DNA of 64,000 nt from Bugula neritina (taxonomy: Eukaryota; Animalia; Bryozoa): contig OZ037770.1 of the NCBI GenBank assembly GCA_964035545.1, positions 8,624,973 to 8,688,972 of the forward strand, in the 5' to 3' direction. The notes beneath the pieces were generated by a model. The model ran no database searches and had not been told where the DNA came from. It worked only from the letters and a program-made list of their open reading frames with translations. Each line of letters opens with the position of its first letter. The first letter of the stretch is position 1. Shown here piece after piece: positions 31,712-48,982 of this stretch. The position numbers were made by a program, and so were the translations under genes.

Positions 31712-41470
<9,759 letters not shown>

Positions 41471-45600: not shown

Positions 45601-45879
45601 AAAGTTGCTTCTATCAAAAAACCTGTCTATAATGATAATTATGTTCACAGTGAACAGTAAATTTTCTATTTGTAAAATAACATATAGTTCTAACTTCACG
45701 TATATTTATTAACATATGTTGACTACTTTACCAACTTCTGTTGAAAATAAGATATTTTAGAATTGAGGCTTAGAGTAAATACGTGACTGAATTTTGTAGT
45801 ATCAAGGAACAGGCAGAGAATTAGCAATAACAACACCTGTCAGGTTGACACTTGTATGGCAAACTGCCAAAAAATATCT

Positions 45880-45886
45880 TATAAAA
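45880..45886 (+). promoter_or_regulatory. TATA box of the cystine-knot gene
   Basis: TATAAAA about 70 bp upstream of the ATG at 45952. Confidence 0.55.
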
Positions 45887-45951: not shown

Positions 45952-48900
45952 ATGGAAATTAAGACTACAATGGTAAGTTTGCATAACTCGTATTTACAAT
46001 ATGCTGGGCTTTTTCTGCAGTTTATATTATTGCAATAGTCCGTTATATTATTGGTAGGTAGTGTAATAAGAAGGTTCAACTTATCCATCTTAATAGAATA
46101 ATAGCGGTAAATATTTGTAGTACACGTACAACATGGAATGTAATGCAGTTTATACTAATGGCAATAAAATATAATGGGGTAATGTAACACAACTGAATAT
46201 AATACTTTAGAATAATGTAGACATATACAATATGACAGTGCAAGGACAAAAAACCATTGCTGTGTGTATATTGTAAAAAGCATATAACATTAGATTACGT
46301 TACGCAATGTTGTTTTGGAAAAATTCTTCGGTTATAAAAATTTGATTAAAGATTACACAAACGAAGCTAATGCTAATGCAGTGTTGCACTTTCATTGTTT
46401 TTATTCCGTTGACAGCTATAGTTCCCAAAGTTTCCATTATTAGCATATTATTTGTTTAGATTACTTAAACATTTTATGATATAGATTTTAATATTGAACC
46501 CAGTTGGAGTAAACTTCAAGCCTTTACAGCTTTCTAATTATTTGTTTATACAGTACAGTCTGTTTCTGACCTAATCATTATAGTCTAAACAGTACAACAT
46601 TCTTTTTCAAGTTTTACAATCTCACAACATAACTTCAATTTATATTTTATGAAATATATTTGTCTAAATTACCTAAAAGCTGAATTTTCTACTGACAAGA
46701 TAATTTCAATCAGCATAATATTGTTGGTTTATAGTTTGCAGTAGGCTACAGTGCTCTCTCCACATCTCATGGTACCAGTTTTCACAAATTTCCAGAGGTC
46801 ATGGGAAGAACTTAGACTCCTGTTTTTGTGGCTTATGTTTGTGTGTATAGGGACATAATAATTGAATTTAATAAATCAGTGATTTAAATCTAGTATTCTA
46901 ACATGTCACGAATCGTGGTTTTCGGACCGTAGCTTAGTGAGATATAGTGGGAGCACTGTATATGGTTTCGACCAACATATCATTTCTACTTTCTGTAACA
47001 CTGTTTGACCATTAGGAATACCTATTAGTAAAACTTTACAGCAAATTGAAGGCTATAATTAGTATAGTTATTATATCTTAAAAATATAATGATTTTTTAT
47101 ATAAAGAGCAAATATTTGTAGATATTTCAGCTGTTAGTCCTAGCAGGAGTGGTCATGGTTAATGTGACGGGTCAAGTACCCCCCAACAATTGTCAGGCCT
47201 CTTCTGGAATATGCACTGCTATGTCCCGTCAACAAAGCTACAGGTTAATATGAATTAGTTTTACAATGCATATAAGCTAAAATAAAAACTAAAGAAAATC
47301 TTCATTAAAAGCTCCTAATTTGATCATAGTGTTGGACAGAAATTATTAAGATTTTTACTTAAAGTAAACATATTTGCCCAGTCCCACAATATACTAATTT
47401 ATGCAAACTTTTAAAACAGATACTATAAGCTAAAATCATAAAATTTTTCAATTTATGAGTGTAATAAGAGAAAATTGTAAAAATGCTATCAAAACTTCAG
47501 CACATGATAGCATTATGTTGCAATGGGATAAATATAGGAGTTATCTGCACAGCTCTCTTGTCTATAAATGAAAAGTTTTGGAGCAAACTGTAAAATAATG
47601 ACAACTTTGCAGGAGTTCAGATGTTGGAGAGATGGAAAGAGCGTTTGCAGCAGAGTACAATAGCAACAAAGCAATGTACTCGGGTTCTGCCTCTTCGGCC
47701 AGGTCGGTAGGAGCCTCTGATACAAGTTCGAGAAGTTTGGGAGTTTCTTCCTCTTTGTGAGTAGTTATGATGATGTAACCACTTGTTCACTTACTATATC
47801 TAAATTACTTTTATACACGTGCTACATTATATGCAGTATAATATCTAAATTACTTCTACACAAGTGTTACATTATATACAGTATAACATCTAAACTACTT
47901 CTACACAAGTGTTACATTATATACAGCAGGATATCTAAACTATTTCTACAACACTATTGGCTTGGCATTTGTGGAATAGGAACTTATTAAATAACTTTAT
48001 CTATTCTATTCTGCAAGCTATCATGCAAATTTAAACCTGCCGAAATTATTCAAACCTAAATATCTCTAGTTTGAGAATTCACATGTTTCTTGTCTAATAA
48101 AATAGTAACTGAAACAATCACCATATCTCTACATATCATTATAATACTGGAGCTGCAATCACTATATTATTATATAATTATTATCTATAATATTTCTATT
48201 TTATACATCTATGACCTTTTATTACTATATTACAGTCAATAACCTTAAATTACTATACCTTCATAGTTATAGCTATACCTATGCCAACTATTATGTTTAT
48301 ATCGCCTCTCAACTAAATTACAAACTTGTTTATATTCTCCTAAAGGTTCAGAGGCAGCTGTCAGAAGACATGTTGGTACTGGAGACCCTTCAGTCTGTAT
48401 GATGGGAAGTGGTGGCTGGTGGTACAGTATGGCCCCCACTGGTACCAGTGGTTCAGGTACTGCTGGTGCAGGAACAGAACGTGCCACAACCGAACTGTAA
48501 GTTCACTATAACACACTACGCTACGTAGTACAAATACTACTACATGAGTGTTGCTATATTTTGGTATGTTGAAATAACTGAGTGTAGTGTAACGTTTGCC
48601 AAGTGGCCCCTTAGTGGTTAAATGAGTAGTGGGCCTGCTTGGAAGGCGGAGGTCTCAGGTTTGAGTCCCAGTGGGGGGAAATGTTTTGCACAAAGAATAC
48701 GCTGTACTGCTCTCTAACTTCTCAATAGCTTAAGAATTTGAAGTTTTTTGTGAAAGAAACATGTCTTATAAGAATAAGTATTACATTCATGGGAGATAAT
48801 TACCAAAACTACACGATCTTATTATACAATCTCAGGGTCCAATCATATGGCGAGGAAGGTGCAGTCAAGAATATTCCTGGGTTCGGTTCTTGGTTTGGAG

Positions 48901-48982
48901 AAAAGACTCTGGTTTAAGATGGAGGTGGTTTAGACTGAGATCTGACTGCTGCTGTATTCCTAGTAACTACCTGGTTGGCTAA
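45952..48982 (+). CDS. Secreted Spaetzle/neurotrophin-like cystine-knot protein (191 aa), Trp/Arg-rich
   Basis: Five phase-consistent exons: 45952-45972, 47131-47243, 47613-47756, 48346-48496, 48836-48982 (576 nt). It has a signal peptide (MEIKTTMLLVLAGVVMVNVTG) and a Ser-rich prodomain. The C-terminal domain reads CQKTCWYWRPFSLYDGKWWLVVQYGPHWYQWFRYCWCRNRTC...RCSQEYSWVRFLVWRKDSGLRWRWFRLRSDCCC, which follows the Spaetzle/NGF Cys spacing and motifs. Confidence 0.85.
46749..46958. mobile_element. Tc1/mariner-type (pogo/Tigger-like) MITE, 210 bp
   Basis: Imperfect TIRs CAGTGCTCTCTCCACATCTCA / TGAGATATAGTGGGAGCACTG, with TA on both sides. Confidence 0.8.
47792..47952. repeat. About 45-bp tandem repeat, 3-4 copies, after the donor at 47757
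   Basis: Units of ATCTAAA(T/C)TACTTCTACACAAGTGTTACATTATATACAG. Confidence 0.8.
48603..48682 (+). mobile_element. tRNA-derived head of a second SINE family, or a tRNA pseudogene
   Basis: GGCCCCTTAGTGGTTAAATG ... GGAGGTCTCAGGTTTGAGTCCCAGTGGGGG has A/B-box-like motifs but no clean cloverleaf. Confidence 0.45.

Follow-up and report, generated by a model that had tools for sequence, protein, structure and literature searches.

A divergent Trp/Arg-rich cystine-knot gene in the bryozoan Bugula neritina and its probable place in the neurotrophin/Spaetzle superfamily

The window considered here is a stretch of 64,000 nucleotides (nt) at G000:C6:8624973-8688972, where G000 denotes a Bugula neritina assembly of 216,009,554 bases and C3 and C6 are contigs of that assembly. 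An unannotated gene in five exons lies on its forward strand between positions 45952 and 48982. As read from the sequence, the locus is predicted to be an intact gene for a pre-pro-protein of 191 amino acids (aa), in which a signal peptide would precede a Ser-rich prodomain (~70 aa) and, at the C-terminus, a cystine knot (~100 aa). Profile and alignment evidence supports membership of the knot in the neurotrophin/Spaetzle superfamily, and we consider it reasonably probable that the gene is a divergent, lineage-specific member, which codes for a processed, dimeric and secreted extracellular ligand of a bryozoan Trp/Arg-rich branch. 

Neurotrophins and Spaetzle are two branches of one ancient ligand superfamily, the former acting through Trk/p75 and the latter through Toll receptors. 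The window gene does not stand alone: it has turned out to be one of five paralogues in the genome, the paralogue search proposed in the initial annotation having recovered four further members. The sole related database protein, here called P0001, is uncharacterised. P0001 is the B. neritina hypothetical protein EB796_003419 (216 aa, assembly GCA_010799875.2), and serves below as the annotated point of comparison.

Structure of the gene

The five exons measure 21, 113, 144, 151 and 147 nt, and their total of 576 nt corresponds to 191 codons and a stop codon, in frame. Every intron is bordered by GT..AG, the donors being gtaagt, gttaat, gtgagt and gtaagt, and every acceptor ag follows a T-rich tract. 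The model put forward in the initial annotation is thus reproduced, with exact coordinates, GT..AG borders and phases which sum to one open reading frame (ORF). The TATA box, signal peptide and Ser-rich prodomain described there are likewise all present: TATAAA at 45879, a signal peptide read across exons 1 and 2 as MEIKTTM followed by LLVLAGVVMVNVTG, and the prodomain in exon 3. The features of the locus are as follows.

45879..45884, + strand: TATAAA box, 73 nt before the ATG of the window gene
45952..45972, + strand: exon 1, the ATG and six codons (MEIKTTM), with a phase-0 donor gtaagt; its counterpart in P0001 is an 8-codon first exon with a phase-0 intron
47131..47243, + strand: exon 2, the hydrophobic core of the signal peptide and the start of the prodomain, with a C-x6-C motif (NNCQASSGIC)
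47613..47756, + strand: exon 3, the Ser-rich prodomain, ending in DTSSRSLGVSSS, with a phase-2 donor
47719..47733, + strand: DTSSR (residues 81-85), a candidate site for processing at a single Arg, which is followed by 106 residues
48346..48496, + strand: exon 4, the N-terminal half of the knot, with Cys I-III, an extra Cys pair and seven Trp; phase-0 donor after Cys III
48836..48982, + strand: exon 5, the C-terminal half of the knot, with Cys IV, the invariant CCC and WRWFRLRSDCCC, then the stop codon
49434..49439, + strand: AATAAA, a possible polyadenylation signal, the first after the stop codon and 452 nt downstream of it, proposed from its position only

The same build recurs in the relatives of the gene. 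The annotated model of P0001 also has five exons (24, 186, 89, 145 and 207 nt), of which the very short first one ends at a phase-0 intron; a phase-2 intron directly precedes Cys I, a phase-0 intron comes after Cys III, and the intron phases of P0001 agree with those of the window gene at three of four introns. The intron after exon 3 is in phase 2 in the window gene, in P0001, in the paralogue C6b and in a relative on the metagenome scaffold L023, and the phase-0 intron between Cys III and Cys IV occupies an identical place in all five G000 paralogues as well as in P0001 and the L023 member. The string TATAAAAGTGA stands at the promoter of the window gene and also ~66 nt upstream of the ATG of the P0001 gene. 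Within the coding sequence, the C-x6-C motif of exon 2 is common to the paralogues on C3 and C6, and the motif ER..(A)EY.SN.A of exon 3 to the window gene and the C6 paralogues. Exon 4 holds two N-glycosylation sequons, both NRT, at residues 136 and 141, the Thr of the second being the last codon of the exon.

Relationship of the knot to neurotrophins and Spaetzle

Profile and Protein Data Bank (PDB) searches with the window gene were run on single exons. Exon 5 alone scored 24.7 bits (E 2.7e-5) against the Pfam NGF family (PF00243) and 23.0 bits (E 1.2e-4) against the Spaetzle family (PF16077), where the gathering cut-off is 27 bits for both. Full-length P0001 behaved similarly, with 24.2 bits for NGF and 23.8 bits for Spaetzle, the latter over profile positions 3-95 of 96, both again under the cut-off. 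The near-equal scores place the family about equidistant from the two Pfam families, passing neither cut-off. At E values up to 10, the Pfam search with exon 5 or with P0001 returned NGF and Spaetzle only, with no coagulin match. The profile check suggested in the initial annotation against NGF, Spaetzle and coagulogen is thus positive in part, with E values of 1e-4 to 1e-5 for the first two, both under the cut-off, and nothing for coagulin.

In the PDB, exon 5 aligns to residues 75-113 of human NT-3 (E 0.002), with which it has W-x3-C, V-R-x-L and WRW[IF]R[IL]..C.C in common. Together with the two Pfam scores, this match bears out the earlier description of the domain as mixing neurotrophin and Spaetzle features. 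Exon 4 alone gave no Pfam match and no meaningful PDB match, and its assignment was made because it aligns to the paralogues and to P0001. When the family is set beside the two canonical neurotrophins of the same genome, Cys I-VI, G..VVQ, Q[YW]F, W-x3-C and WRW[FI]R all fall in register. Knots of the IL-17, Noggin and DAN/Norrin types were rejected as candidates: they appeared only as weak feature or structure neighbours, and the six Cys of the NGF-type knot are all present.

The canonical neurotrophin genes are the following.

G000 C6:12814165-12814461: canonical neurotrophin gene
G000 C3:29237127-29237435: canonical neurotrophin gene

Both are single open frames, of 218 and 199 aa, which score 80-86 bits against NGF and carry the furin sites RSRR and RRRR. 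Since the genome holds these two, the window gene belongs to a separate, divergent clade and is not the neurotrophin orthologue of bryozoans. Each canonical gene shares its chromosome with members of the divergent family, an arrangement that may reflect an old duplication.

The family resembles neurotrophins in its pre-pro architecture, in the six knot Cys in the same order, in its basic mature domain, and in the motifs W-x3-C before Cys IV, Q[YW]F before Cys II and the strand WRW[FI]R[LI]..C.C. It departs from the canonical members in its score (24.7 bits for exon 5 and 24.2 bits for P0001, compared to 80-86 bits), and the window gene differs further by its lack of a furin site, by a knot split by a phase-0 intron rather than contained in a single exon, by a Cys I-II loop shorter by ~6 residues, by three extra Cys, by a Trp content of 12% compared to 3-4%, and by a net charge of +13 compared to ~0. 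The likeness to Spaetzle consists of a comparable profile score (23 bits), a single-Arg candidate site, an odd Cys count which allows an interchain disulfide, an intron within the knot, a shorter Cys I-II spacing and the nearest protein-language-model clusters. In contrast to Spaetzle, the family lies under the Pfam cut-off, matches the Spaetzle structure weakly, has neurotrophin-like motifs in the C-terminal strand and occurs in a lophotrochozoan.

Predicted fold

An AlphaFold2 model was made for residues 96-216 of P0001, with an alignment composed of the family pieces and the two canonical neurotrophins. The model (mean pLDDT 78) is all-beta and has a long hairpin at its C-terminal end. Compared with the PDB by Foldseek, its first 35 matches are all neurotrophins (NGF, NT-3, BDNF and NT-4; E ~1e-4, TM ~0.5), with structures of NGF and NT-3 closest, followed by coagulogen at rank 36 (E 0.014) and Spaetzle at rank 38 (E 0.19). 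The knot domain of P0001 thus models as a neurotrophin-type cystine knot. Among ESM Atlas feature neighbours, Spaetzle clusters are nearest (0.93), then mixed NGF/Spaetzle clusters.

A small family of bryozoan genes

The five paralogues of the Trp/Arg-rich family in G000 consist of the window gene and two head-to-head pairs.

C6:15.49/15.51 Mb, head-to-head: C6 pair, near-identical copies
C3:1.52 Mb, head-to-head: C3 pair

Exon 4 of the window gene is 40% identical to that of the C6 paralogues and 35-43% identical to that of the L023 member. P0001 is the orthologue of the C3 (+) paralogue, and hence a paralogue of the window gene. The two have in common the five-exon build, the signal peptide, the C-x6-C prodomain motif, DTS[SA]RS and the core W..G.C...V..L...R...CCC.P; unlike the window gene, P0001 lacks the extra Cys pair, has a Trp content of 5%, and carries, between Cys III and Cys IV, an Arg-rich insert that includes an additional Cys. 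An orthologue of the window gene itself is not annotated in the sibling B. neritina assembly GCA_010799875.2.

Beyond the genome, the exon-5 profile matched two sequences only, P0001 and P0002, among 1.84 billion representative proteins, a search in which a profile of 50 positions needs ~47 bits, so that more distant members were possibly missed. The knot of P0001, used as a query for homologues among database proteins, retrieved only P0001 itself, and a scan of JGI metagenome contigs for the family gave no match. P0002 is an exon-5 ORF on the bryozoan-like metagenome scaffold L023, where an exon-4-like piece lies upstream and both knot-flanking intron phases are preserved; among G000 sequences, this piece is best matched by exon 4 of the window gene. 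The scaffold also has a Pellino exon, whose identity to that of G000 is only 72%; this indicates that L023 derives from a distant species and that the Trp-rich type is old. No synteny was detected between the L023 scaffold and the window. Taken together, these genes apparently form a small clade, restricted to bryozoans and distinct from canonical neurotrophins, and literature searches yielded no account of neurotrophin/Spaetzle-like genes in bryozoans or of a Trp-rich knot family.

Several further observations concern these relatives. The Pellino gene of L023 (4034-5792, - strand) stands 3-5 kb from the family member, and Pellino is an E3 ligase of the Toll pathway; in G000, Pellino (C3:1020419-1020664) lies ~0.5 Mb from the C3 pair, a proximity that may represent loose synteny or chance. 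Exon 2 of a C6 paralogue (L020:6665-6978, with the matching part of L019) contains a tandem 5-residue unit, (R/P)TTER, in the prodomain, the copy number of which differs between the C6 copies by a 105-nt gap (35 codons) in one of them. In exon 5 of the C3 pair (L004:1459-1662 and L005:1450-1686), the loop between Cys III and Cys IV carries an Arg-rich insert with a furin-like RRSRR or RRGRR and an extra Cys, which may be an internal cleavage site within the mature domain. At the C3 (+) locus, the two public B. neritina assemblies (L021 and L022) diverge by ~11% in the introns and 17% in the flanks, a divergence that fits sibling species of the B. neritina complex rather than one population.

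Composition, cysteines and constraint

The knot of the window gene spans 98 residues (exons 4 and 5), with nine Cys, 12 Trp, seven Tyr, five Phe, 14 Arg, three Lys, three Asp and one Glu, and a net charge of +13. Trp accounts for 12% of its residues and aromatic residues for 24.5%. The counts reported earlier (9 Cys, 12 Trp, 14 Arg, 3 Lys and 4 acidic residues) were reproduced by our recount. Net charges of +10 to +17 occur in all five G000 paralogues, and the canonical neurotrophins of G000 are near neutral. Mature vertebrate neurotrophins, too, are strongly basic. Because positive charge is thus family-wide and also found in vertebrate neurotrophins, only the Trp content stands out. Among the G000 genes compared, only the window gene and the C6 pair reach 11-12%, as against 5% in the C3 pair and 3-4% in the canonical neurotrophins. 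The L023 member, by our count, has ~9 Trp in ~100 residues, and the Trp positions of the Trp-rich type are retained in this distant species. In the alignment with NT-3, several Trp and Arg of the window gene occupy positions which are Trp or Arg in ordinary neurotrophins.

The nine Cys of the window gene can be divided into the six knot Cys, an extra pair and the middle Cys of CCC. The extra pair characterizes the Trp-rich members, as C-x3-C after Cys I and C-x-C at Cys II, and its two Cys are present or absent jointly, which points to a possible fourth intrachain disulfide. All eight family sequences aligned have the middle Cys of CCC, which is a candidate for an interchain bond. The core W..G.C...V..L...R...CCC.P is kept throughout the family, P0001 included.

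In the knot of the C6 copies, eight synonymous and three non-synonymous changes give a dS of 0.163 and a dN of 0.012 (dN/dS ~0.07), and the prodomain of the same copies is near neutral (0.086 and 0.078). A constrained knot beside a near-neutral prodomain would be expected if the mature knot is the functional part of the protein. The C3 (+) orthologue pair of the two B. neritina assemblies has a dN/dS of 0.24, at 11% intron divergence. For the window gene itself the evidence for selection is indirect. The DNA sequencing run X1 contains two coding variants, 48472 G>A (AGG>AGA) and 48952 C>T (TGC>TGT), both synonymous, along with eight variants in intron 4, and the 12 TGG codons, each one step from a stop codon, are all intact.

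A composition of this kind may also be taken to mean that the knot is an extracellular effector or material, whether a Trp/Arg-rich membrane-active antimicrobial, a clotting or adhesive protein akin to coagulogen, or a matrix component of the zooid wall that binds glycans or chitin. The 12% Trp, 24.5% aromatic residues, net charge of +13 and four acidic residues of the knot would be in keeping with such a role, as would the lineage-specific expansion of the family into tandem pairs and the appearance at Foldseek rank 36 of coagulogen, a protease-activated clotting protein of the same fold. Horseshoe-crab coagulogen is similar in its NGF-type knot, its basic character and its cleavage after single Arg residues, yet it shows no match at the sequence level, is larger (175 aa) and has more disulfides; coagulogen is known only from chelicerates. 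Against an effector or material speak the strong purifying selection on the C6 knot, the retention of Trp positions in a distant species, unlike typical fast-evolving antimicrobial peptides, the ordinary neurotrophin positions taken by several of the Trp and Arg residues, the basic nature of mature vertebrate neurotrophins, and the missing Pfam coagulin match at E values up to 10. Purifying selection and the preserved Trp positions fit a ligand or a scaffold better than a fast-evolving antimicrobial peptide, and we hold an effector or material role to be unlikely.

Putative processing of the prodomain and the comparison with Spaetzle

A motif scan of the 191-aa window protein for the furin site R-x-K/R-R found none, the only RxxR being situated inside the knot, in agreement with the initial annotation. 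All family members have instead a single Arg 12-15 residues before Cys I, with no furin site. In the window gene this Arg belongs to DTSSRS, which has a counterpart, DTSARS, at the matching place in the C3 pair and P0001, and the C6 pair has EYRSNQAS in place of the motif. The earlier claim that cleavage after DTSSR would release exactly 106 aa is right as to position and count; as the C3 pair has a version of the motif and the C6 pair lacks it, the exact count is best regarded as a coincidence.

A single-Arg site raises the possibility of a Spaetzle-type cytokine, whereby cleavage by a clip-domain serine protease behind the Arg of DTSSR would release a disulfide-linked dimer of the 106-aa fragment to activate a Toll receptor. 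The missing furin site and the recurrence of the single-Arg motif in the C3 paralogues are compatible with such activation, the Cys count is odd and CCC is invariant, and TIR-domain exons are present in G000. The spacing from Cys I to Cys II is 35 in the window gene, shorter than in neurotrophins (41-42) and comparable to Drosophila Spaetzle (36). Spaetzle also supplies the nearest ESM Atlas feature clusters (0.93). The intron inside the knot is a further parallel, since insect spz genes possess a characteristic intron there (PMC8296651), yet introns also interrupt the knots of some neurotrophins (PMC2772990), and a 2009 survey reported neurotrophins but no Spz genes in lophotrochozoans (PMC2772990).

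Other results are less favourable to a Spaetzle-type cytokine. Spaetzle scores no better than NGF with either exon 5 or P0001, its structure ranks 38th in the Foldseek comparison (E 0.19), after 35 neurotrophin chains, and the best-conserved motifs of the family (Q[YW]F, W-x3-C and WRW[FI]R) are those of neurotrophins. The DTS.RS motif, moreover, is missing in the C6 pair. On balance, a Spaetzle-type cytokine seems a rather improbable identity for the product of the window gene.

Proposed mode of action and the points that weigh against it

As a divergent ligand of the neurotrophin/Spaetzle superfamily, the window protein would be secreted as a pre-pro-protein, and its prodomain would be removed by a non-furin protease cleaving after the single Arg that lies 12-15 residues ahead of Cys I. 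The knot would then act as a dimer, possibly linked via the invariant middle Cys of CCC, and serve as an extracellular ligand for a receptor of either the Toll type or the Trk/p75 type. The extra aromatic residues may enlarge the hydrophobic faces of the sheets, and the Arg-rich surface may favour retention on anionic matrix or membranes.

Several points weigh against this interpretation. The cleavage site, the dimerisation and the receptor are extrapolated from what is known of the family, and the DTS.RS motif does not extend to the C6 pair. The scores of exon 5 remain under the curated cut-offs of both Pfam families. The fold was modelled for P0001 and not for the window protein, the two being 27-29% identical in exon 4 and 55-57% in exon 5, and canonical neurotrophins were part of the alignment. 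The dN/dS values are based on few changes (11 in the C6 knot). In a search of sequencing runs, the window locus was matched solely by X1, a DNA run whose contigs pass through the introns and contain no exon joints; no RNA run was found, the RNA data for B. neritina being outside the reach of the search. Finally, products of the window gene or of the C6 pair do not occur among ~15 billion predicted proteins.

The latter two results would also be obtained if the locus were not expressed, either as a silent or recently dead duplicate with exons open by chance, or with its 5' exons mis-modelled. Exon 1 is only 21 nt long and lies 1.16 kb from exon 2, and its sole support is the analogy with P0001. 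These arguments are countered by five open exons with consistent phases and canonical splice sites, by the conservation of the TATAAAAGTGA promoter string with the paralogue P0001, by the intact state of the 12 TGG and nine Cys codons, by the synonymous nature of both coding variants, and by the 43% identity of the exon-4 type with a member found in a distant species; the RNA data for B. neritina, as noted, lay beyond the run search. A non-expressed locus thus appears very improbable.

Significance

Situated between two Pfam families, without a furin site, and accompanied by two ordinary neurotrophins in the same genome, the family provides a natural test case for the emergence of new ligand classes from the knot scaffold. 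It offers a test case, too, for Toll-type cytokine signalling outside arthropods. The extreme Trp content (12%), kept across distant bryozoans, makes for an unusual cystine-knot surface and may be a sign of a new mode of binding. There is a small chance that the Trp-rich branch, to which the window gene, the C6 pair and the L023 member belong, is the lophotrochozoan counterpart of Spaetzle, a Toll-signalling cytokine activated by a protease at a single Arg. If true, the protease-activated Spaetzle-Toll system would extend beyond arthropods, with bryozoans as a second, independent system for its study. The practical value of the window gene will be modest until its expression and a receptor or an activity are shown.

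Other features of the locus

The introns of the window gene contain several elements of their own. In intron 1, the stretch 46736-46969 has a contig word depth of 3103 in the DNA run X1, compared to ~75 elsewhere (~40-fold), and is probably a dispersed repeat or a transposon fragment. Intron 3 harbours a 45-nt unit at 47796-47950, in 3.4 tandem copies with 89% matches. At about 48590-48700, intron 4 includes a tRNA-like stretch (agtggttaaa ... ggtttgagtccc), which looks like a fragment of a tRNA-derived short interspersed element (SINE); ARAGORN called no tRNA in the introns of the window gene, this stretch included.

Two ORFs on the opposite strand may also be mentioned. An 80-aa Pro-rich antisense ORF at 48245-48487 (- strand) lies opposite exon 4 and is not a separate gene, as it arises because the many TGG codons read CCA on the other strand. 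The second, at 41222-41470 (- strand), is an 82-aa first coding exon located 4.5 kb upstream of the knot gene, in which a transmembrane helix comes after N-glycosylation sequons; it resembles the N-terminal part of a G protein-coupled receptor (GPCR) gene, transcribed divergently from the knot gene.

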